The notes under the pieces were generated by a model. It was not told the DNA's origin. It saw nothing but the letters and a program-made list of their open reading frames with translations, and ran no database searches. This document shows positions 1 to 62,402 of a DNA stretch of 64,000 bases, piece after piece. The DNA is from Octopus sinensis (lineage: Eukaryota). The DNA lies in contig NC_043002.1 of assembly GCF_006345805.1 (NCBI RefSeq), positions 96,038,001 to 96,102,000 of the forward strand, given 5' to 3'. The position numbers and the translations under genes were made by a program. Position 1 is the first letter of the stretch. Every line of letters begins with the position of its first letter.

Positions 1-2706
1 ATAATTAAAAGTAATCAACAAAACAAACGAACAAAATAAACTTTAATAAAACATATCCACCAGAATGGCTAGCCACCAAAAATCCAACTAAAACTGGTCT
101 GATAATGAAATCGACGTTCTTATCAACACATGGCATTGCCTTACCCAAACAGAGAGCATAGGTGCTTCGTGTCTGAACGAAATTGCTAAACGAACATTTC
201 CCCATTTGCAAACTCGATCTGAACAGCAGATACAAAATAAATTAAAACAAATCGAAGTTGCTTTTAAATTAATAAATAAACACTTCGATAAAGTGAGATG
301 TGTTTTCTCTTCAACAACAACAACAACAGCTACAGCAACAACAACAACTTCAGCAGCAACAACCTCAGCGGCAACAACAACAACAACCTCAACAACAATA
401 ACAGATACAGCAACAACAACAACTTCAGCAGCAACAACCTCAGCGGCAACAACAACAGGATGAACCACTCCTTGATTCATCTACAATGGCTGATTTGCTA
501 AACGAGGGTCACACAGCAGGAAGCACCACCCCTTCCTTTCACGGTCCCAGCAGCTCAATCATCATCACTGTCAACATCATCTCTTCTGCTTACTACTGCT
601 AGTACTACTCCCACTATGTATCCACAAACATCTTTGTCTACCGCTATCTCATGGAATTGACCTCCTCAATCGTCATCACTGTCAAAATCTCTTCTACCTA
701 CTACAACTACTACTACTAATGCTATCTCAAGGAATTTACCTCCTACAGGTCACAAAAGTCGCCAAAACCTCAACTATCATCTACACCTCCCACAACTCAA
801 ACACGCACCTACACACCCACTCGAAACCCCATCATTTGCTGATATTCTCTTCGCCATAGATTATGCACTGATAGAGACTTCAAATTCACCCATTTACCTG
901 GAACAAAACGCTCTATCCCCACAAACTACAACAGCAACCACCATAATACATACTCTATTACAACACCACCACAACCACCAATATCTCAAACAAGGAATCC
1001 CCAAATCTGCCGCTATTCCCAGCGAGATAGATTGTGTTTGCACAGGGATTGCCCCTTTACCCATCTCCCGGGGACTCGTCGGACAAATGACATTATAAAT
1101 AAAAATAAAAGCAAAAAACCTACGACTCATATAGAAATAACCACTCATATAAAAATAACCACAACCACAGTCACCTACAGTTCCCTAGACAGGAAACCTC
1201 TTCTTCCCCTTTTTTAGCTATAATGAATCTGGCAAAAGAACTGGAAAAAAACATCCGAGCTATCACCCACCACTATCCACCACTATTACCCCACTGCACA
1301 TGCCATTAAAAAGCAATCAAATTAACAAATCACCAAAACAATTAAAACCATCCACTCTCGCCTCAACTTTTTTGCTTAATGCCCAAGGCATCAGCCCTTC
1401 CACCAATACACAAAAATGGAAGATAAAATTCCTGGAGGACTGGGTCGATGCCCATCCAAACCACATCCCTTTCTTCGTCCTCACTGAAACCCATCTTAGT
1501 AACCTTCACTTGGAAGCCGAGGTGAAAGTTAAAAATTTCAAAGCCATTCGTGCTGATCGTGCTGGCAGTAGAAAGGGTGGGACTGCCATTTATGTTCATG
1601 ATTCTTTCTCAACTGAGGCTGTGAACATATTTTCCAATGGATACTGCGAAGCAGTCGCTGTATTCAGTCAAACCAACAACTTAACAGTAGTTGGGCTCTA
1701 CAGACCACCCCAAGCGCCCCTACCATGCTTCAAGGAATGCCTCAACAACATAAAGTGTTTCATTCAGCAGTGTCAACCTGACAACATTTTAATGATGGGA
1801 GACTTCAACCTTCCCAGGGTTGACTGGTCTACAAACAGTCTGCCGCCAGGTTCTTCTCTCTCAACCCCTGACAGGGAGGCAGTGGAATCGCTTCTTGACT
1901 TCATGGATGATTTCTTCCTGTCCCAACTGGTACTTGAACCAACGAGATGTCATAAAAACATCTTAGACTTAATTTTCAGCAATCACACTGATACTATCCA
2001 CAATATTGCAGTGGAGAAAACCCTACTCTCTGATCATGACATGGTTCTCTGTGATCTGAGATTTCACTGGCCAAAATGCAAAACAAATGTCATCCCTCCT
2101 GTTCATCCATTTGACACTATGGATTTCCACAATGCAAACTGGGAAGCAATCAATAATGATCTTGCACAAGTCGATTGGTCCTTCACACACACATACACAC
2201 CTGCCAACATCAAAAAGTCCTGGCAGTCATTTGTAGACACCATTACGAACATATGTGCAAAACACACCCCATTAAGATCTGCAAACAAATCTAAGTGTCG
2301 AATCCCTAGAAATAGAAAATCTCTCATCAGGAAAATTAAAAGAATTAACAAAAAAATCAACAAGCTGAAATACTGTCAACAGCAACACACCAACCTGACT
2401 GCCATCTCGTTGCTAGAGATTAAAAAACATAAACTCCAAAACAACATCAATAGTCAGCGAAGAGCTGAAGAGGCCTGGGCCATTGAGAAAATCAAACTCA
2501 ATCCCAAAGTGTTCTTTTCATTTGCAAAAAAACACAGAGTCACTGGTTCTACTGTTGGCCCTCTGATTGATGAAAATGGTACTCTTCAAGACAATGCCAA
2601 AACCATGGGAGAGATATTGCAGAAACAATATCGCTCTGTTTTCAGCAATCCTGATATGACTAATCTGGGCTGTATCAGTGATATTACTCCCCAATACACT
2701 TTATCG
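1..2706 (+). mobile_element. CR1-type LINE, 5' portion: degraded ORF1 region plus ORF2 AP-endonuclease, truncated before the RT domain
   Basis: ORF 1300-2826 has APE motifs (LLNAQGI, LTETHL, VVGLYRPP, MMGDFNLP, NILDLIF, SDHDMV) followed by the CR1 linker (IKLNPKVFFSFAKK, VGPL); homology stops near 2706 where unrelated sequence begins. Two CCCH-like motifs lie upstream at 834-911 and 1005-1083. Confidence 0.85.
313..457 (+). repeat. (ACA)n-rich tandem duplication (~72-bp unit) within the LINE ORF1 region
   Basis: Two copies of acagcaacaacaacaacttcagcagcaacaacctcagcggcaacaacaaca; the source of the poly-Thr/poly-Val/poly-Asn ORFs. Confidence 0.85.
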
Positions 2707-3535
2707 AAAAAAAAAAAGATGGCGAAAATCATTTCAGACTGGGGTGGTGAGGGGGTGAAAAAAATAAATTTTCAAAATATTTTCCAGTTTTTTTTTTTCA
2801 TGAAAAGATGCTTCTCGTCATTCTGAAGACTTTGCTGAGAAACATTGGAAAAAATCCCTGTCAAAACAGAGAAATTCTAACTTATGTGGGCCATCTGATC
2901 CAAAACTTCGTTTTCCAGAAACTCCTCGCCCCCACCCCCTTCCAAAAATTTTACCCACAGATTTCTTTGTAATTGTAATCTACACCGTTTGAAAGAAATT
3001 TGCTTAAAATTTCATCAAAAGATACCTATTTTCCAGAAAGTTATGAGGGGAAATTGTTGAGTCCTGTGAATTTTCCAAAATTACTCTCCCCAACCCTTCA
3101 GAAATTTTTCCAACAAATCTTTACATACACTCAATCTACAGGATATAAGCAATTATTTGGTGAAAGCTTCGTTAAAAAGTATCCATTTTTCTGGAAGTTA
3201 TGAGGCAACAAAGTCAGGGTGTTAAACTGTAGTTAAACCCTTTTTCAATAAAAGTTAACGGATTAACGTTAACTTCTGTTACATTTTCAAAGAATTAACA
3301 GATTAATGCTGTTAACTTTTTGGTTAACAGATTAACAAAGTTAACTTTTCAATTAATGGTGCCCACTTGTGTGTGTGTGTGTACATATATATATATATAC
3401 ACACACACATATTGATATATGTGTATTTGTATAGATATATTTGTATATACTATCCATACATACATACATACATACATACATACATTATGGCTGCCCCCTC
3501 GTTATCAAGTATGGCCATTGCACAAAGCTTAACTG

Positions 3536-11484: not shown

Positions 11485-12382
11485 ATGTGTAAGTCATGCC
11501 AGTACAAGAAATGAAGCCAGTATGCTCCGATGGATGTGTAATGTCGGTGTTCATACTCGACAGAGTGTAAGTACCTTGAGAGAAAAGTTGGACCTAAGAA
11601 GCATCAGTTGTGGTGTACAATTGAGACGTTTGTGCTGGTGTGGTCATGTGGCGAGAATGGATGAAGATAGTTGTGTCAAAAAGTGCCACACCCTGGCGGT
11701 TGAGGGAACCTGTGGAAGAGGTAGACCCAGGAAAACCTGGGACGAGGTAGTGAAGCACGACCTTCGAACTTTAGGTCTCACCGAGGAAATGACTAGAGAC
11801 CAAGACCTTTGGAAGTATGCTGTGTGTGAGAAGACCCGGCAGGACAAGTGAGACCATAACCCGTGGCCTCTACCTGAGATGTAGCCAGTCCACTTATGCA
11901 TACCTTTCCTTCTTGGGACACAAAACTCTACTTGTGAAGACCTGTTGAGGCAAGTGAGAATCAAAATCAAAATCGATCAACATCAATGGAAATTGTAGCT
12001 GTGATACCAGGGCCGGTGGCACGTAAGAGAACCATCCGAACGTAGCTGTTGCCAATGCCGCCTCGACTGGCCTCCGTGCCAGTGGCATGTAAAAAGCACC
12101 ATCCAATCGTGGCCGTTGCCAGCCTCGCCTGGCCTCCATGCCGGTGGCTCGTAAAAGGCACCATCTGATCGTGGCCGTTTGCCAGCTTCGTCCGACACCT
12201 GTGCCGGTGGCACGTAAGAAGCACCCACTACACTCACGGAGTGGTTGGTGTTAGGAAGGGCATCCAGCCGTAGAAACACTGGCAGATCAGACTGGGCCTG
12301 GTGCAGCCTTCTGGCTTCCCAGACCCCAGTTGAACCGTCCAACCCATGCTAGCATGGAAAGCGGACGCTAAACAATGATGAT
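11485..12382 (+). mobile_element. RTE LINE 3' end with complete modular 3'UTR and (GAT)n tail
   Basis: ORF 11522-11851 MLRWMC...LCWCGHVARM...GRGRPRKTW...DLWKYAV is the typical RTE C-terminus. Confidence 0.9.
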
Positions 12383-27469: not shown

Positions 27470-28960
27470 ATAGATGGGTCTGCTCAAGCACAACAGATCA
27501 CCGATAATCTTGCTACTTTGTCATCTCCTCAGTGAGACTCAACATCTGAAGATCATTTTTTACCACTCCATCCCATGTCTTTCTAGGTCTTCCTCTTCCA
27601 CAGGTTCCCTCCAAATTTAGAAATCTGCACTTCTTTATGCAGCTGTCTTCATATATGTGCATTACATGACCATAACAGCAGTCTTTTTCCTCAACATATT
27701 TACACTTTGTTGTACATGCATACTGATATTGCACATCCTGCAAAGCATACTGGCTTCATTTCTTTCAAGCCTTTGCATGTCCTCTGCAATAACAGCCTAC
27801 ATTTCACTACCATGCAGCACAGTTGTTTGTACACAACTATTGTACAATTTACATTTCACTTTGACAGTGAAGCTGTTTATTATTAGTAAAAGTAATAGCT
27901 CTCTGAACTTTGCCCAGCTGCCACTAATTCTAGCATCTATACTTTCAGAGCATCCGCCTTCACTGCTAATTTGGTCTCATAAGTAATGGAAACTTTCTAC
28001 TACCTAAGGATCTTCCTAAGCATTTGAAGAAATCTATTTCCTATGTGTTCTTAATGTACCTTGTTCCTGCACATGTGCCACAAACACACTACATTCTTTG
28101 TTAACCTTCTTGTCATTCCAATGCACTTCTTAATTGTCCATAGCTTGCACTGGGTACACCATATGGAATTTCCACCTACACCTTTTCTACATATCAAGTA
28201 GGGCCATTTCCCTAAAAGAATTCGTAATTTGTTTGCTTTCTTGCTTACAAATATTTTAGTCTTTGCTAAATTAACTCTAAGGCCCCTGAAATTTCTTCTA
28301 GGTCTATTATAGATTTAGCTATAAGAATAAGGTCATCAGCACTAAGGAGCTCTAAAGGGCAGTCAGTTTTAAATTCCTCTCTTACAGCCTGGAGGACTAT
28401 GTTAAACAAGGAGGGGCTGAGAACTGAACCTTGATGAACTCCTACCCACACATTAGATTTGTTGCTATACTCATTGCTGACTTTCACCTCACTGATAACA
28501 TCCCTGTTCATGGCTTGGATGGCTCTCACCAGCCACTCATCCACCCTTAGCTTCTGCATCAACCACCAGAGGAGGGAGTGGGGGACCCTGTGAAAGAGTT
28601 TCTCCATGTTGACAATTACCAAGTACAGTAGTTTGTTTTTGGCTAAATGCTTCTCATGCAGTTGCCTTACTAGACAGATAGCGTCAGTAATGCTTCTCTC
28701 TGACACAAAACCCGAACTGCATCTCATCTAGGTTAACATGCTCCCTAATAGATTGAACTGTTACCCTTTCTGTAACTCTTGTGACTTGATCCAGCAAACT
28801 CATACCTCCGTAAATACTTCTGTCTAAGGCATCTCCATGAATTCTGTGTCCAGTGCTGATTGGCCTAGTGGTTGTGTTATACTGAGTGATTAAGTCATCC
28901 CTCAGTTGTACACTAGTATTTAGGGAAAAAAATATGAACGAGGATTTAGTTGTTGAAGGT
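27470..28960 (-). mobile_element. Degraded RTE LINE ORF2 (RT to C-terminus)
   Basis: ORF 28266-28727 (TDAICLVRQLHEK, VGVHQGSVLSPSLF, LLSADDLIL) and 27513-27743 (GRGRPRKTW). Confidence 0.85.
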
Positions 28961-34446: not shown

Positions 34447-37056
34447 AACACCACGTGACATATTTCTTTTGGGTGATTTCAACTTCCCCTACGTCAAATG
34501 GCCCGAAGGTCACATACTCTCAGGAATGAATCAATGCAAGCAAGTACAGGTGGAGTCCCTGCTCAACCTCACCAATGCCTTATTCATGGAGCAAGTTCTA
34601 CTCAAGCCAACTAGGGCAAATAACATTCTGGATCTCTGCTTCACGAACAATATGGACATCATTCATGATGTGAAAGTGACACCGACATCAGTTTCGGATC
34701 ACAACATAATAGAGCTGTCTATGTTTGGGCCGAAAGTAACCAGAGACATACAGCCTAAAGGAAGCACCCAAAATCTCTCCAATCTGAACTTCCATAAAGC
34801 AGATTGGAAATCGATCCAAAAAGAGATCCTCAGAGAGGACTGGCCGGAATGTCTCTCCACACCAGACATTGACATGAAACTAGAATGTTTCATGTCTTCT
34901 GTGCAAGCAGTATGCCAGAAATATGTCCCAGAGCACAAGGCCAAAACAAATAGGAGCAAGATTCCAAGAGACAGGAAGATCCTCATGAGACGAAGGTTGC
35001 AAATCGTCTCAACCAACATCCCAAAAGTAGCGAAACGTCCTGCCTAAAAACAACACTGATGGAGATCGAAAAAAGGCTGCAACAATCCTATGTGAAGGAG
35101 AAAGCAGACAAAGAAGTCTGGGTTATAAAAAACATTAAATCAAACCCAAAGGCCTTCTTTCATTACGCGAAAGAAACAGTCTCAGTGCACTACAAGATAG
35201 GACCCCTCCTCCAAAAGGATGGCTCCCTCACAGACAGTCCAACTATGATCAGTGAGATGCTGAATGACCAGTTCAAAAGTGTTTTTAATATCCCGTTGGA
35301 ACACAGACAAGTGAACGAACCAGTGGACTTCTTTGCCGCCTCACCTATAACCAGTGAGGCGGTTACAATAGAATGTATTGACATTAGCGAAAACGATGTC
35401 CTACTAGCCATAGATGAAGTGGACACAAACTCAGCTGCTGGTCCAGACGGTTTCCCAGCCATCCTCCTCAAAGTGTGTTAGCATGCCCTGGCAAAACCCC
35501 TCAAGATTCTCTTCCAGAGCTTTTTTGCGAATGGAAAACTGCCAAGCAAGCTGAAGGAGGGAATAATATGCCCAATACATAAAGGGGGAAGTAGAGCAGA
35601 TGCCAAAAACTATAGGCCTATGTCTCTGACTTCACACATCAACAAAGTCATGGAAAGGATAGTCAGAAAGAAACTAATCGCATTCCTTGAGGAAAATAAC
35701 TTGCTGAGTAATACCCAGCATGGTTTTCGACCAGGTAGGAGCTGCCTGACCCAGCTCTTACAGCATTATGACTGGTTGTTGAGGCAGTTACTCAAAAAAT
35801 CAAATGTGGATGTAATCTACCTTGATTTTGCAAAAGCTTTTGACAAGGTGGATCATGGTATGATATGCCACAAACTACATGACCTTGGCATAGCTGGAAA
35901 ACTTGGAGTGTGGTTGCATGACTTCCTGAAAGATAGGAGTCAGGCAGTAGTGGTTAATGGAGCTACCTCTATGAACACACAAATAGTGAGCGGTGTTCCA
36001 CAGGGCACTGTCTTTTTATAGTGGCCCTCTCAGATATGCCCTCAAATGCCCGGATAGCCACTCTGGCCAGTTATGCAGATGATACGAAAGTCTTGCAGAA
36101 AATACAGAACCCCAGCGATGTTGCACACGTGCAGCAGGAGTTGGACTCAATCTACAGATGGACTGAGGATAATAATATGCAGTTTAATGCTGAAAAATTC
36201 CAGGCCCTGCGCTACCAGCATCCAAAACTGAATATTAAACTTACAGGATACACCGGTCCACAGGGAATTTCAATCCCAGAGCCTAAGTCTGTGAGGGACC
36301 TGGGTATTGACATGAGTGATGATATCTCTTTCCAAGTGCACATTACCAGGATGGCGACAAAGTGCAGACGACTGGCTGGGTGGATCCTAAGAACATTCAG
36401 AACCAGAGATAAAGAAACCATGATGGTCCTCTGGTGGACATTCATCCTCAGTCGCCTGGATTACTGCTCACAGCTATGGTCACCCACCAGTGTAAAATTA
36501 ACAGCGGACCTTGAAGCAATCCAGAGAAGATTCACAAAGAAGATCGTCTCTTTGCAACAGCTCAGCTACTGGGAAAGTTTGAAACAGCTAAGACTCTACT
36601 CCCTGGAGAGAAGACGGGAGAGGTATGCAGTAATATATGTCTGGAAGATCCTGGAAGGAATTGTGCCAAATTTTGGCATTGTAAGCTACACCAATGCTAG
36701 AACGGGACGACACTGCATAGTGCCAAAGATCCCAGCAATGCCATCACGCTTCAGGACCAGCTTCTGCAACAGCCTGGGTTTCAAGGGCCCACAGCTTTTT
36801 AATATTCCCCCAAAGAGTCTGAGGAACTTGCACAAAGTAGATATAGCGGTTTTTAAATCAAAGCTGGACATCTTCCTGTCAAGAGTCCCAGATGAACCTA
36901 CCTCACAGCAAGAGGTGCAAATGAGAGTAGCTGTATCAAACTCCATTCTTCACCAAGTGCCACATATTAGACGAGGTTCGTCGTAATAACAGTGTAGCAG
37001 AAAACGGCAGTGCATCAGCATGGCCGCAGCTCTGAGCTGAAACTAGAAAAAAAAAA
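34447..37056 (+). mobile_element. CR1-type LINE ORF2, 5'-truncated in the endonuclease, with stops and frameshifts, intact 3' end and A-tail
   Basis: LGDFNFP, NILDLCF, SDHN (APE); AGPDGFP, NYRPMSLTS, QHGFRPGRSCLTQL, YLDFAKAFDKVDH, SGVPQG, YADD, RDLG, RLDYCSQLW, YSLERRRER (CR1 RT and C-terminus). Confidence 0.92.
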
Positions 37057-37084
37057 TATATATATATATATGTATATATATATA

Positions 37085-37487
37085 AGAAAATGGAGGAAAA
37101 ACAGCAAATTGAAGTGCATCTTTGATGCTAAAAACCCATTATTTAATTAGTAAAGCAAGGTGAAGGTAAGAGTGAGTTTACTGCTGCTTCTGTGCACAAT
37201 GTTGGCGTAAATATGTATTTACCTCATTGCAAATGGTAGACGTCATCAGACTTCAAATTCAACCAACCCCTATTCTTCAACTACTTCACAACGGATTTAA
37301 TGAACTTTGAATGCAACTAAATTGTAACAGTTTCGAATCATTGAACATTTTCTTTTCTGGTTTTTCCGCCTACCTTGCACTCTATTCTCCTCTTTGTCTA
37401 TCTCTGACGTCTTCGGTCTGATGACGTCTACCATTTGCAACGAGGTAACATGGTACAAGGAAACAGCTATAAATTCACTATTACATT
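37085..37487. repeat. Old inverted-repeat element hosting the Gypsy insertion (right arm continues at 43119-43200); Penelope-like centre tentative
   Basis: 37085-37251 is the reverse complement of 37416-37487 joined to 43123-43200; the centre reads ILQLLHNGFNEL stop and contains ctctgacg/ctgatga. Confidence 0.6.
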
Positions 37488-37527
37488 TGTAACGTGAAAG
37501 GATCTATCATCGAAGCACTGGAAGGGT

Positions 37528-37902
37528 GTCGAGATCCTTTCTAGTCACATACAAAATTCTTGCAGAAAACAAACAGACGAAACTCAGGTAAAGGTGAACA
37601 GACAACTTGGTTTATTGATTCATGGTTGTACGTTGTCTGATGGGGGAATAGACACCTCTGATATACTGCTGGTGTTGGTCGTTGAGGTTGGTTGAAGTTG
37701 GTTGAAGCTGGTGTGTGGCTGTCAGAGCCAGGAAAACCGTGACCGATCGCAGTGCTGTCTTGAGCTGAAGAGAGAGATTTGAGGTTCGCGGGCTCGAGAG
37801 ATGTTTTCCCGCACATGCGCATGGGGAAGACTTCCGGTGGCCACCCGGAAGTAGTCCCATTCTGTGCACGCGCGCCGAACCCTACACAGTAGCATCACTA
37901 CA
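37528..37902 (-). repeat. Inverted copy of the Gypsy LTR (lacks the terminal 7 nt), preceded on the minus strand by the PPT
   Basis: Reverse complement of 42738-43111; gggctcccctcc at 37903. Confidence 0.9.
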
Positions 37903-38663
37903 GGGCTCCCCTCCGAGTGCGAAGTACGACAACCAGAATATTGTGGTGGTGCTGCAGAAAACAGAAGGCTTGCCGATCCCCCAGAAGACTTGGTACATAC
38001 TATTATACAATAAGAAACATTTTAAAGAAAGTTAAATGTAAATTGTTTTTGAAAGTTTCTTGGGCCAATGCACTGTTCTGCCCGATTTTGTAACATACGG
38101 TGTGCTCGGGGCACCCGTTGACGGCGAGGGTGGTGTTGTAGGAGCCGGTGAAGGCAAAGGCGTCTGTGCAGGTGAAGGCGTTTGTGCCGGTGAAAGTGTT
38201 GTTAAAGGTGCATAGGTGGGTGTGTCAAGGTTGTCATCAAAAGATGAAGACGTCTCAAAATGTGCCTTTTTAAAACGGTCCACGGAAACGGTCCCTCCGA
38301 ACGACCATTTATCTCAATCGTGAAACCTTTGGTGTGCGAGAAAGCACACGAAAAGGTCCTTTATAGGGAGAAACAAGTGGGCCCTTCACAGAATCGTCCC
38401 GAACAAACATGCAACCAGGTGTTCATATCCGGTGGAAGATGGGACGGTGGAGATTGCTTTCTGGGAAGCATGGGCGGAAGGTTTGAAAAATATTCCCGCA
38501 GTCTGGTGACATAGGTCGCCGGATCATGGGGCGGGGAAGTGTCTGGCACCAACATCGTACCGGGCAATGCCAGTGTGGTACCATACAGCAGCTCTGCAGC
38601 AGAAAACCCCATTTCTCGACCATACCTTCTGCCCCCTTCTCACAGATTCCTTCCGACAAAGGC

Positions 38664-39401
38664 ATGGCTTCAGGTTTGCCTTCATTTACGGGGGATGCGG
38701 GGCTGTGGTTTGCACAGGTGGAATCAAACTTTGCCGCGCATACCATTCCGCCACAACAGCAGTTACATCTACTGTATTCAAGTTTGCCCTCCCGGCTCGC
38801 AACATCGGTCAGGGATCTCATTGTGAGTCCCCATCCTGACGCCACATATGCGTCAGTAAAGGCGGAGATCCTCCGTCGCAACACGCACTCAGAAGAAAGT
38901 CAGTTTAATGAACTGATGGCCGACGAGCAGTTAGGGGACAGAACTCCATCCCAATTTCTGCGCCATCTAAGAGAGCTAAGCGGCAACGCCGCTGACACGC
39001 CGCTCTTACGTAAGATATTTTTCTCAAGGCTGCCTGCCCACGTGCAGACAATGTTGGCCACGGCACTGGATGCTGTGTCTGTGGACCAGATCGCCACGAT
39101 GGCCGACAAAGTGTTGGAGTTTTCGCGCCCATCTCCCTCGCGGGGCCTGTACGCATGTACAGAGCCCCCCCCGACACCTCCGACGAACGATAAACTGGGC
39201 GAGAACATCGACGCGCTTACGCGGAGGATCGATGATCTGTGCCGTGCGATCGGACGCCAATCTCGTAGTCGCAGTAGCTCTATTTCCCGCAGTCGGAGTG
39301 ACTCTGTTTCTCATTCCGGCTGGTGCTGGTACCATTCGAGATATGCCGAAAAGGCAGATCGGTGTACCCAGCCGTGCACTTTCAAGCCCTCGGAAAACTA
39401 A
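38664..39401 (+). CDS. Gypsy gag (true start may be upstream or lost)
   Basis: LPSF...LWFAQVESNF, LGDRTPSQFLRHLR, CWYHSRY...CTQPCTF are characteristic of CsRn1/Kabuki-like gag. Confidence 0.85.
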   Translation: MASGLPSFTGDAGLWFAQVESNFAAHTIPPQQQLHLLYSSLPSRLATSVRDLIVSPHPDATYASVKAEILRRNTHSEESQFNELMADEQLGDRTPSQFLRHLRELSGNAADTPLLRKIFFSRLPAHVQTMLATALDAVSVDQIATMADKVLEFSRPSPSRGLYACTEPPPTPPTNDKLGENIDALTRRIDDLCRAIGRQSRSRSSSISRSRSDSVSHSGWCWYHSRYAEKADRCTQPCTFKPSEN

Positions 39402-42400
39402 ATCCGGAGGAGGTGAGCACGTCACCTTCTTCCATCTCGTTTCCCAAACATCGTGCATTCTATGTAAAAGATCTGGTGTTGAAGACATTCTTCATGGTGG
39501 ACACCGGCTCCTGTTGCAGCATCTGGCCCCTTCGTCTGGCTGCAGACAAGCCCAAGCGCTCTTCGATTGTCTTGCATGCTATTGACTCGTCTCCATAACC
39601 ACTTACGGTCAGATTTCGCTGCGCCTCAACCTCAACCTTTGTCGAGACTTTCGATGGTTTTCGTCATCGCTGACATCCCGCATCCTATTCTCGACGCTGA
39701 TTTCCTGGATAGGTTTAACCTATTGGTGGATGTCAGGCGTCGGAGGCTTCTTGATAGCACGACGTCGCTCTCTACACCGACTGGGAGTTCCACCACTGCG
39801 GTCCTTAGCCCGACATTCTTTGTTGCCACCTCTGGAGACCCTTTTCACTCTCTTTTGGTTTCATTTCCGGAGCTAGTGGACATTGCATTTAAACCGGAAA
39901 AGCCTACCCACTCGACCCTCCATTTCATCACCACCAATGGGCCACCTGTATTCTCACGCCCCCGGCGCCTAGCGCCAGACCGACTAAAAACGGCCAGAGC
40001 CGAGTTTGAGCACATGCTTCAACTTGGCCTTATACGCCCCTCCACCAGCCCATGGGCACCTCCCCTTCATTTGGCGCGAATGGGCGAGTCTGATTTTCGC
40101 CCGGTTGGAGACTATCGACGCCTCAATGCCGTCACAATAGCCGATCGCTATCCGATTAGAAATCTCCGGGACTTTACGGCAAATCTCCATGGTTGTACCA
40201 TTTTTTCGAAGGTCGATCTGATACGCGCTTACCACCAATACCGGTCAACCCAGCCGACGTTCCAAAAACTGCAATCACTACACTACCCCGTTTGGGTGTT
40301 TTGAGTTTTTGTACATGAGTTTCGGTTTGCGGAATGCTACTAGCACCTTCCAGCGTTTCATTGATGAGGTTGTCCGCGGTCTTGATTTTGTGTTTGCCTA
40401 TGTCGATGACATACTCATTGCGAGCGACACACGAGAAATCATCTCCGGCACCTTTCTCAACTCTTCCAGCGTCTTCGCGCGTATAGCATACGCATAAACC
40501 CCGACAGTGTGTTTTCGGACGCTCTTCCCTAGATTTTCTAGGGCATCATATTGATTCGACTGGAATCAGCCCCCTCTCGTCAAAAGTCGATGCCATTCAA
40601 CGCATCGCACCCCCCACTTCCTTGCGCCAGCTCAGGCATTATCTAGGGATGGTCAATTTCTACCGACGCTTCATTCCCGGTTGTGCAGATAAGCTGCTAC
40701 CTCTCACCAGGCTGTTAAAGGACTCTCCTAGAAAGGACAGTCAAGTCACCCTCTCTGTTGAGGCAGTGACAGCCTTTGAGTCCATTAAGAAGGAGCTGGC
40801 TTCTGTTTCTTTGCTTGCACATCCAGTTCCTGGTGCTTCTCTCTCTTTGACTGTGGACGCATCGGACACTGCGATTGGCGCTGTGTTACAACACACAGTG
40901 GATGACCATGTTCGACCTCTAGCCTTCTTTTCCCGTCAACTGCAACCAGCTGAACGACGATACAGCACCTTTGATCGTGAGCTCCTAGCGATCTATCTAT
41001 CGGTTCGTCATTTCCAGCATCAACTTGAAGGGCGAGATTTTGTGATCTATACGGATCACAAGCCCCTTACGTTTGCCCTGTTTTCAAAAACGGACAAACT
41101 CTCTCCCCCGTGCTTTTCGGCACCTGGATTTTATCTCTCAATTTACTAGCAACATTCGACACATACCTGGAAAAGAGAACGTTCCTGCTGACGCTCTCTC
41201 TCGCCTTCCAGTTTGCGCCCTTTCGTCTCCTGCTGCTATCGACTTAGCTGCCATATCGCAGGAGCAGCCACCTTTGGCGTCGTTAGATTTAACTTCTCCC
41301 AAGTTCTCCTGTTGCCAGTTTTCCTACCTTCCGCTTCCGTCAGCCGAAGGCACCATTCTTTGTGACACTTCAACTGGATCTCCCAGGCCACTGGTGCCTG
41401 AGACCCATCAACGCTCAGTGTTTGAAGCACTGCACTCCTTATCACATCCTGGCATCGCTGCCACCCTCAAACTAATCACTGCTCGGTTTTTCTGGCCGAA
41501 TATGCGTCGCACAATTACTTCTTGGACACGCACCTGCTCCAAGTGTCAACGATCCAAGATTCAACGGCACGTTCGTGCCCCGCTTGGACAATTTCCCCCA
41601 CGGAGGCCCGTTTTCGCCATGTCCACATCGATCTGGTTGGACCATGGCCTGTGAGTCGCGGGTTCTCTTATCTATTAACTTGTGTCGATCGTCTCTCCGC
41701 TGGCCAGAAGCCATTCCGATAGCAGACATTTCTGCTGAGACTGTTGCGCGAGCTTTCGTTTCAAACTGGATTTCTCGCTTCGGAGTCCCGTCCCGATTGA
41801 CAACTGATCGTGGACGACAGTTTGAGGCCTCGCTATTTCGCGAATTGTCGCGAATTTTGGGTATGCACCATATCCACACCACAAGCTACCATCCAGCGTC
41901 TAATGGATTGGTTGAGCGGTTCCATAGACAGCTCAAGGCCGCTCTTCGTGCCTCTTCGGACCCACAGTCCTGGATCGAATTTCTGCCCATTGTGCTTCTC
42001 AGCTGTCGGACTGCTGTCAAGGCAGACCTGGGGTTTTCTGCTGCAGAGCTGCTGTATGGTACCACACTGGCATTGCCCGGTACGATGTTGGTGCCAGACA
42101 CTTCCCCGCCCCATGATCCGGCGACCTATGTCACCAGACTGCGGGAATATTTTTCAAACCTTCCGCCCATGCTTCCCAGAAAGCAATCTCCACCGTCCCA
42201 TCTTCCACCGGATATGAACACCTGGTCGCATGTTTTTGTTCGGGACGATTCTGTGAAGGGCCCACTTGTTTCTCCCTATAAAGGACCTTTTCGTGTGCTT
42301 TCTCGCACACCAAAGGTTTTCACGATTGAGATAAATGGTCGTTCGGAGACCGTTTCCGTGGACCGTTTTAAAAAGGCACATTTTGAGACGTCTTCATCTT

Positions 42401-42618
42401 TTGATGACAATCTTGACACACCCACCTATGCACCTTTAACAACACTTTCACCGGCACAAACGCCTTCACCTGCACAGACGCCTTTGCCTTCACCGGCTCC
42501 TACAACACCACCCTCGCCGTCAACGGGTGCCCCGAGCACACCGTATGTTACAAAATCGGGCAGAACAGTGCATTGGCCCAAGAAACTTTCAAAAACAATT
42601 TACATTAACTTTCTTTAA
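39392..42618 (+). pseudogene. Gypsy pol (PR-RT-RNaseH-IN) broken by several 1-bp frameshifts
   Basis: MVDTGS (protease), RPVGDYRRLN and FSKVDLIRAYHQ, AYVDDILIAS (RT), LTVDASD...YTDHKPL (RH), HSLSHPG...CSKC (IN zinc finger), TTDRGRQF...VERFHR (IN core). Confidence 0.9.
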
Positions 42619-42737
42619 AATGTTTCTTATTGTATAATAGTATGTACCAAGTCTTCTGGGGGATCGGCAAGCCTTCTGTTTTCTGCAGCACCACCACAAT
42701 ATTCTGGTTGCCGTACTTCGCACTCGGAGGGGAGCCC

Positions 42738-43118
42738 TGTAGTGATGCTACTGTGTAGGGTTCGGTGCGCGTGCGCAGAATGGGACTACTTCCGGGTGGC
42801 CACCGAAGTCTTCCCCATGCGCATGTGCGGGAAAACATCTCTCGAGCCCGCGAGCCTCAAATCTCTCTCTCGGCTCAAGACAGCACTGCGATCGGTCACG
42901 GTTTTCCTGGCTCTGACAGCCACACACCAGCTTCAACCAACTTCAACCAACCTCAACGACCAACACCAGCAGTATATCAGAGGCTGTCTATTCCCCCATC
43001 AGACAACGTACAACATGAATCAATAAACCAAGTTGTCTGTTCACCTTTAACCTGAGTTTCGTCTGTTTGTTTTCTGCAAGAATTTTGTATGTGACTAGAA
43101 AGGATCTCGACCACTACA
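42738..43118 (+). repeat. Gypsy 3' LTR (381 bp)
   Basis: TGTAGTG...CACTACA terminal IR, preceded by PPT ggaggggagccc, with AATAAA inside. Confidence 0.92.
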
Positions 43119-43299
43119 CATTCACTTTGCTTAACTAATTAAATAATAGCATTTTAGCACCAAAGATTCACTTCTATTTGTTGTTCTTCCTCCCTTTTTT
43201 TTTATGTATATACACATTAAACTATGGTGTACCTTTTTAAGTTACCTGCTGCCGTATACCTTATACCAAGGAGCATAATTAGGTAATTATCAAGAAAGC

Positions 43300-43862
<563 letters not shown>

Positions 43863-43879
43863 GAAAATTGGACCTTTGG

Positions 43880-57704: not shown

Positions 57705-57928
57705 ATTGTGTGTGTGTATATATATATGTATGTATGTATATATATAGTGTGTGTATGTATGTATGTATGTATATATATATATATTATATATATATAGTGT
57801 GTATGTATGTATGTATGTATATATATATATAATATATATATATATAGTGTGTGTATGTATGTATGTATATATATATATTATATATATATATAATATATAT
57901 ATATATATATAGTGTGTGTGTATATATA

Positions 57929-57970
<42 letters not shown>

Positions 57971-58310
57971 TGTGTGTGTGTATGTATGTATGTATGTATA
58001 TATATATATAGTGTGTGTGTGTGAATGTATGTATGTATATATATAGTGTGTGTATGTATGTATGTATGTATATATATAGTGTGTGTGTGTGTATGTATGT
58101 ATATATATAGTGTGTGTATGTATATATATATATATATATGGTTATCAGTAACAATAAAGGGTGAAATTAATTAATTTGGAATAATTATTAATTACACCAA
58201 GTAGTAGTACTTACTTACTTATATATATATATATATTATATATAGTGTGTGTGTATGTATGTATGTATGTATATATAATATATATATATATAGTGTGTGT
58301 ATGTATGATG

Positions 58311-58345
<35 letters not shown>

Positions 58346-58417
58346 TGTGTATGTATATATATATATTATATATATATATATGTATGTATGTATATATATA
58401 GTGTGTGTGTGTGTATG

Positions 58418-58466
<49 letters not shown>

Positions 58467-58580
58467 TGTGTGTGTGTGTATGTATGTATGTAATGTATAT
58501 ATATATATATAGTGTGTGTGTGTATGTATGTATGTATATATATATATATATATATATAGTGTGTGTGTATATATATTGTC
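57705..58580. repeat. Two blocks of compound TA/TG/TATG microsatellite with repeated agtgtgtg motifs
   Basis: Direct inspection; interrupted by unique sequence at 58140-58215. Confidence 0.95.
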
Positions 58581-61895: not shown

Positions 61896-61969
<74 letters not shown>

Positions 61970-62245
61970 TATATATATATGTATGTATATATGTATAAAT
62001 ATATGTATGTATATATGTATAAATATATGTATGTATATATATATATAATATATATGTATAAATATATGTATATATGTATAAATATATGTATATATGTATA
62101 AATATATGTATATATGTATAAATATATGTATATATATATGTATGTATATATGTATATATATATATATGTATGTATATATGTATATATATATATATGTATG
62201 TATATATGTATATATACATATATGTATAAATATATGTATGTATAA

Positions 62246-62278
<33 letters not shown>

Positions 62279-62325
62279 TGTATATATGTATATATACATA
62301 TATGTATAAATATATGTATGTATAA

Positions 62326-62358
<33 letters not shown>

Positions 62359-62368
62359 TGTATGTATG

Positions 62369-62402
<34 letters not shown>

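Follow-up and report, generated by a model that had tools for sequence, protein, structure and literature searches.

Complex long terminal repeat (LTR) elements that lie within one target-site duplication (TSD) have been explained by an abnormal template switch and one integration event after it (PMC1950507). In HIV-1, too, reverse transcription is reported to generate integrated proviruses with inversions and asymmetric LTRs (PMC9278108). We analysed a comparable structure in Octopus sinensis: a 5,631-bp Ty3/Gypsy element at 37488-43118 of a 64,000-nucleotide stretch (NC_043002.1, positions 96,038,001 to 96,102,000 of the forward strand), the whole of which we call the window. The left 1.1 kb of this element is the reverse complement of its own integrase tail, polypurine tract (PPT) and LTR. 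We incline, with little more than even confidence, to the view that it is one aberrant reverse-transcription product, born of a non-homologous switch between nascent minus strands and integrated once as a unit.

The element lies between two copies of CATT (37484-87 and 43119-22) and has TG...CA tips, with TG at 37488-89 and CA at 43117-18. Its inverted arms (37528-38611 against 43111-42029) stand 3.4 kb apart and are 98.3% identical; of the 1,089 aligned columns, 7 are mismatches and 11 are gap columns. This pairing far exceeds chance expectation. No further copy matching the element was found elsewhere in the 64-kb window. For comparison, six O. sinensis loci were retrieved via their gag proteins, a tiny sample selected by gag annotation. 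The 5' LTR, the primer-binding site (PBS) and about 325 nt of the leader are missing from the window element: the PBS motif TGGTGACCCC and leader homology are absent across the whole window, and both are present in the family copies L001-L005. The absence of a 5' LTR and PBS, asserted by the earlier note on this DNA, is thereby borne out. Typical Ty3/Gypsy features that are present comprise a PPT ahead of the 3' LTR, the TG...CA tips and a short TSD. Two direct LTRs are not found, one LTR being direct (42738-43118) and the other inverted (37488-37902), nor is a PBS adjoining a 5' LTR. The parts of the element are as follows.

37488-37902, minus strand: LTR in inverted orientation (415 nt) whose canonical U5 end is complete; its alignment to the LTRs of L001-L005 runs through the last base.
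37903-38611, minus strand: inverted PPT (about 37906-37914) and integrase C-terminal coding tail (corresponding to 42029-42737); from the arm alignment.
38609-38611, plus strand: internal junction with the shared CCA; both parent sequences compared.
38612-38663, plus strand: final 52 nt of the leader; by comparison with canonical relatives.
38664-39401, plus strand: gag, an intact open reading frame (ORF) of 245 codons with DUF7041 and a C-terminal Cys/His motif; Pfam E = 9e-14 and translation.
39302-42618, plus strand: pol, with reverse transcriptase (RT), RNase H, H2C2 zinc finger and DDE integrase core; Pfam, tblastn and stop-free stretches.
42726-42737, plus strand: PPT GGAGGGGAG (42726-42734), then CCC; L001 has the same context.
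42738-43118, plus strand: direct LTR, 381 nt, starting with TGTAGTG, with AATAAA at 43022-43027 and ending in CACTACA; from the LTR alignment.

The surrounding DNA provides a control for the insertion. The host sequence forms an inverted repeat of about 180 nt per arm, with arms 84% identical and a 164-nt spacer; it may be a small foldback or a repeat resembling a miniature inverted-repeat transposable element. This repeat comes after the 3' end of a long interspersed nuclear element (LINE) and a (TA)n tract, and the Gypsy element sits in one of its arms. Three segments, none with an assigned strand, enter the comparison.

37068-37251, no strand: host inverted repeat arm A, the paralogous empty-site control; its reverse complement aligns with 37416-37487 plus 43123-43225.
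37416-37487, no strand: left part of host arm B, ending in the left TSD copy CATT (37484-37487); from the alignment to arm A.
43119-43225, no strand: right TSD copy CATT (43119-43122) and the remainder of host arm B; from the alignment to arm A.

Excising 37488-43122 yields a gapless alignment of arm B to arm A across the join. In an ungapped register test, the exact excision gave 112/141 identities, while other offsets from -4 to +8 gave at most 74/141. Since only the exact excision restores the register, all 5,631 bp count as inserted DNA when set against the paralogous arm, with a 4-bp duplication alongside. The predicted empty-site sequence at the locus reads ...TTACATTCACTTTG.... This confirms what the earlier note had proposed on the TG...CA tips, the CATT duplication and the empty site. 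A 4-bp TSD after integration, also part of its account, agrees with the norm of the family, where the duplication is TATA in L001 and AATC in L004.

Three of the retrieved relatives (L001, L004 and L005, from GCA_006345805.1) are normal elements of the order LTR-PBS-leader-gag-pol-PPT-LTR. Each has two direct LTRs of about 410-420 bp, with pair identities of 99.5%, 97.4% and 97.2%, respectively. The canonical LTR begins TGTAGTGATG and ends CCTGTTACA; then follow AT, the PBS TGGTGACCCCAAG, a leader of about 380 nt and gag. This PBS would seem to resemble the tRNA-Trp type. A scan of the whole window for tRNAs found none. Over gag-pol, these canonical copies show about 90-92% nucleotide identity to the window element and share with it the LTR start TGTAGTGATG, the PPT context, a U5 hairpin, the 4-bp TSD and a DUF7041 gag. 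Two direct LTRs, AT plus the PBS TGGTGACCCCAAG and the leader of about 380 nt belong to the canonical copies only, whereas the window element has the inverted 3' tail instead. In canonical copies the U5/PBS boundary is GTTACAATTGGTGACC (L001 7612-7636, L002 7603-7627), with the 6-nt palindrome CAATTG spanning the LTR end and the PBS start. Through this palindrome, the 3' ends of two plus strands could prime each other.

Pfam identifies RT_RNaseH_2 (6e-30), Integrase_H2C2 (5e-19), rve (3e-6) and, weakly, RVT_1 in pol. The resulting order of RT, RNase H and H2C2 plus DDE integrase, backed by tblastn, is that of Ty3/Gypsy elements (Metaviridae). The gag of the window element is 83-91% identical to annotated Octopus sinensis proteins. 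According to tblastn with O. sinensis pol pieces, the pol frame changes at least five times, near 39595, 40238, 41100, 41605 and 41700. Interrupted pol reading frames also occur in all five retrieved O. sinensis family copies, L001-L005, so that, taken alone, the frameshifts of the window element are not assignable to sequencing error or to decay. Compared with L001, the element shows 92% identity over 4.5 kb, from 55 nt ahead of the gag ATG to 43070 in the 3' LTR, an identity that speaks for descent from canonical family copies. Closer subfamily copies, sought for LTRs ending in CACTACA, were not found with gag (best 91%) or with integrase (best 83%). The window element, a single dead copy, is by descent a member of an octopus Ty3/Gypsy family and not a new kind of element.

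At the internal junction 38611/38612, the CCA at 38609-38611 fits both parents: the reverse complement of integrase, which reads ...AAAACCCCA and continues with GGTCTG, and the leader, which reads ...CTCTCTCCA and continues with TTTCTC. There is no filler and no homology beyond these 3 nt. A non-homologous template switch or microhomology-mediated joining characteristically leaves a junction of this kind.

The differences between the arms record what happened afterwards. Outside the tip there are seven substitutions, all transitions and four of them at CpG, and the eleven gap columns are all 1-2-nt indels, mostly in short homopolymer runs. At 6 of the 7 substituted sites, one arm carries the base of all four O. 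sinensis copies compared and the other arm a unique change; the relatives do not agree with one another at the seventh (37785/42854). Of the derived changes, three fall on the left arm, while the right arm has three or four. Singleton transitions on both arms imply that the arms were identical at their origin and then mutated independently in the genome. Neither consensus noise nor two different family members would leave such a pattern. It speaks against a duplicate made by artefact and, weakly, against the independent insertion of two elements.

When aligned with four canonical LTRs, the left tip, 37488-37527 (40 nt), proves to be the canonical U5 end. It reads TGTAAC on the plus strand, the reverse complement of ...GTTACA, and the inverted arm thus reaches the very tip. 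The earlier note had the left-arm match running from 37528 and joined at 38612; the junction holds, and the arm end moves to 37488 by the canonical LTR alignment. We also considered the left tip as a foldback or direct-copy addition to the inverted LTR and discarded this idea, as canonical LTRs show a normal U5 end there. The inverted arms of integrase tail, PPT and LTR were correctly described, with the right LTR now corrected to 42738-43118 (381 bp). It is in this right LTR that a loss lies: 33 nt are absent after 43111, namely the loop and the 3' half of the U5 hairpin.

The right tip, CACTACA, differs at two positions from the canonical CGTTACA and is the reverse complement of the U3 start TGTAGTG. 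Viewed on the minus strand, the unit reads TGTAGTG...GTTACA, with tips as in a normal element. The proposal of two U5-side ends is therefore not established, given that the right tip could be U3-type. The U3 and U5 tips share 5/7 bases, and the call between them rests on two transitions, one at CpG. Subfamily 3' LTRs ending ...CTCGACCACTACA would make the right tip an ordinary U5 variant.

A hairpin is predicted at the U5 end of the window element (37488-37548, minus strand; -11.6 kcal/mol, z = -3.9). The last 55-62 nt of the canonical LTR are predicted to fold in the same way, the tip GTTACA pairing with an upstream TGTGAC, also in L001 (12432-12486). The hairpin is kept between the window and the O. 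sinensis copies despite sequence differences.

A second abnormal copy was met among the retrieved loci. L003 (7653-12461 of O. sinensis CM016859.1:57508291-57525040) belongs to the same family and has no 5' LTR. Its body begins at the PBS, flush with a satellite of the host that is rich in (TA)n. Beyond the 3' LTR (11833-12257) come a head-to-head junction of U5 with U5, GTTACA-A-GTAACAGGAT, and an inverted LTR remnant. That remnant consists of the first 194 nt of U3, at 97% identity, and ends in CACTACA at the host boundary. Two odd copies, L003 and the window element, among the six retrieved O. sinensis loci and the window may hint at a tendency of the family.

In the course of events that we favour, a nascent minus-strand DNA would have extended no further than across the 3' LTR, the PPT and about 700 nt of integrase. 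This short strand would have left its RNA template and annealed, by the 3 nt CCA/TGG, to another minus strand at its 3' end; this second strand had presumably reached 55 nt ahead of gag on a co-packaged genome. Each strand would then have copied the other to its 5' end. The product would be a linear duplex with a 1.1-kb tail at both ends in opposite orientation, devoid of a 5' LTR and PBS, and integrase would have joined both of its TG...CA tips to the host with the 4-bp stagger usual for the family (CATT). The right tip can be accommodated in two ways. Synthesis may have stalled in the U5 hairpin and switched to the 5' end of displaced plus-strand strong-stop DNA, the outcome being a U3-type right tip, i.e. 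a normal U3/U5 pair for integrase. Alternatively, a 33-nt deletion and two transitions may have come later.

Several observations bear on this proposal. The single CATT pair and the exact excision that restores the host support a one-step insertion, and integration as one unit, already suggested by the earlier note, stays the best-supported reading on these grounds. The inverted arm ends at the canonical U5 tip, as expected for run-off at a minus-strand 5' end. Arms identical at birth and the 3-nt junction free of filler support a single product. Three points weigh on the other side: the right tip is not a plain U5 end and requires a further event or another switch, just one copy is available, and cellular repair and switches during replication produce 3-nt microhomologies just as typically. 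The main rival, possible though in our estimate unlikely, is a normal minus-strand element (TGTAGTG...GTTACA, TSD CATT) that was rearranged inside after integration. A template switch during replication or repair could have created the inverted duplication, with the tail kept, the stretch from tail to leader copied backwards and the rest deleted; or else a second copy could have nested in the opposite direction, with two deletions coming after. Such an origin agrees equally well with the TSD and the empty site, and the CCA at 38609-38611 would suit end joining or a template switch in the cell. The outermost tips are canonical on the minus strand, and CACTACA (43112-43118) is explained without point mutation, yet this "U3 identity" amounts to two transitions, one at CpG, between tips sharing 5/7 bases. 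The alternative also demands two breakpoints, one 7 nt from one tip and the other 40 nt from the copy of the other tip, with none in the host. Random breakpoints in 5.6 kb would seldom fall so close to the tips, which makes for a strong coincidence. Its second junction has no microhomology, the nested route takes three independent events, and arm differences made up of singletons fit one template better than two independent family copies.

An assembly artefact, in which a chimeric or fold-back long read or a misjoin of two copies made the junction 38611/38612, seems improbable. The 1-2-base homopolymer indels in the arms and in pol do suggest a noisy long-read consensus, as the earlier note cautioned; misassembly, also raised there, is unlikely from the sequence. 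The junction does not lie in a repeat where an assembler could misjoin, its sides sharing 3 nt only. A fold-back read would set a sequence beside its own reverse complement, whereas 3.4 kb separates the arms here. The host DNA is collinear on both flanks and bears the TSD, and the CpG-type transitions on both arms, together with the 33-nt indel, indicate two physically distinct, independently mutated copies. We give hardly any credence to a family of inverted-repeat Gypsy derivatives able to transpose with this structure, even though the tips and TSD are clean and L003 also has an inverted LTR arrangement. The window holds no second copy, and the architecture and junctions of L003 differ. The element has no PBS, no LTR promoter directed toward its body and at least five frameshifts in pol, and its inverted arm holds coding sequence that ends at an arbitrary point instead of a defined terminal repeat. 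The suggestion of such a derivative thus finds no support, there being one copy with no inward promoter, no PBS and a frameshifted pol.

Other mechanisms were tried and rejected. Autointegration connects a tip of the LTR with internal sequence and produces circles; a connection of that kind is found at neither junction. A simple internal inversion would flip a segment, and here the inverted part duplicates the tail instead. Recombination between the LTRs of two elements would leave mismatched flanks, which is contradicted by the empty-site result.

The neighbourhood is rich in repeats. LINE fragments with endonuclease and reverse-transcriptase domains lie at 34469-36986 (plus strand), 1300-2826 (plus strand) and 28266-28727 (minus strand). 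Of these, the fragment at 34469-36986 carries frameshifts; it shares its strand with the Gypsy insertion and stops a short distance upstream of it. When the LINE ORF 36021-36986 was searched at the protein level, nothing above 67% identity came up, and no orthologous locus was found this way. Long and imperfect (TA)n/(ATAT)n arrays occupy 43340-43870, 57717-58558 and 61930-63994, the last filling the final 2 kb of the window with a GC content of 17%.

Both LTR promoters point outward, the PBS is missing and pol is frameshifted, so the product cannot replicate. The arms do have the structure of a hairpin-RNA source, being 1.09 kb long, 98-99% identical and 3.4 kb apart. From sequence features, no function would be expected for the window element, and its only conceivable activity would be that of a hairpin-RNA source upon upstream read-through. 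Putative read-through from the plus-strand LINE at 34469-36986 could possibly run through both arms as far as the AATAAA (43022-43027), and the transcript would then give about 1 kb of double-stranded RNA on folding; the 1.1-kb double-stranded RNA put forward in the earlier note is thus a possibility and no more. A precedent for such an outcome is Mu killer, an inverted duplication of MuDR that silences its family, where an accidental inverted duplicate acts as a hairpin-RNA silencer. We regard it as very improbable that the window holds an animal counterpart of Mu killer born of an error in reverse transcription, i.e. that integrase, by inserting an inverted-duplication cDNA, created a hairpin-RNA locus in one step and that LINE read-through gives small RNAs against its own family. 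If it did, L003 would also suggest a family prone to joining nascent strands by their 3' ends.

Should the one-step origin be correct, the element would be a natural fossil of a reverse-transcription error in which two nascent strands primed each other, and it would mean that an LTR-retrotransposon integrase can insert cDNA without a 5' LTR. To our knowledge, aberrant products of this sort have seldom been documented except in work on retroviruses in cell culture and in patients. Through them, genomes might plausibly come by hairpin loci that target an active transposon family. If the element was instead rearranged after a normal insertion, it would be an ordinary decayed transposon; either way, it is one non-functional copy in repeat-rich octopus DNA. 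Altogether, we are dealing with a rare structural variant, relevant to reverse-transcription errors and to the origin of hairpin loci, and otherwise ordinary.

Among known systems, L1 twin priming also joins two nascent cDNA strands at microhomology, giving a 5'-inverted insertion. L1, however, uses target-primed reverse transcription and makes no long duplicated arms, unlike the window element. The complexes described by Sabot and Schulman are, like the window element, abnormal composite LTR elements within one TSD, attributed to a switch between co-packaged templates and one integrase event (PMC1950507). They are direct fusions with three LTRs in the same orientation and two internal regions, whereas the window element has two opposed LTRs and one internal region. 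The text of PMC1950507 never uses the word "inverted", while the switch proposed for the window is between strands of opposite sense. HIV-1 proviruses can be rearranged in reverse transcription and yet be integrated, and the LTRs of one provirus can differ by deletions (PMC9278108, in the parts covered). They stem from a retrovirus in somatic cells, the 5' LTR is kept in the cases reported there, and the same parts describe no inverted duplication that replaces it. A literature search on inverted-LTR Gypsy or Ty1 structures surfaced only DIRS papers and general reviews. DIRS-type retroelements share inverted terminal repeats with the window element and differ from it in having a tyrosine recombinase instead of a DDE integrase, no TSD, and defined, complementary terminal and internal repeats. 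In the window element, the only integrase domains found are rve and H2C2, of the DDE type; a 4-bp TSD is present, and the arms are its own 3' end.

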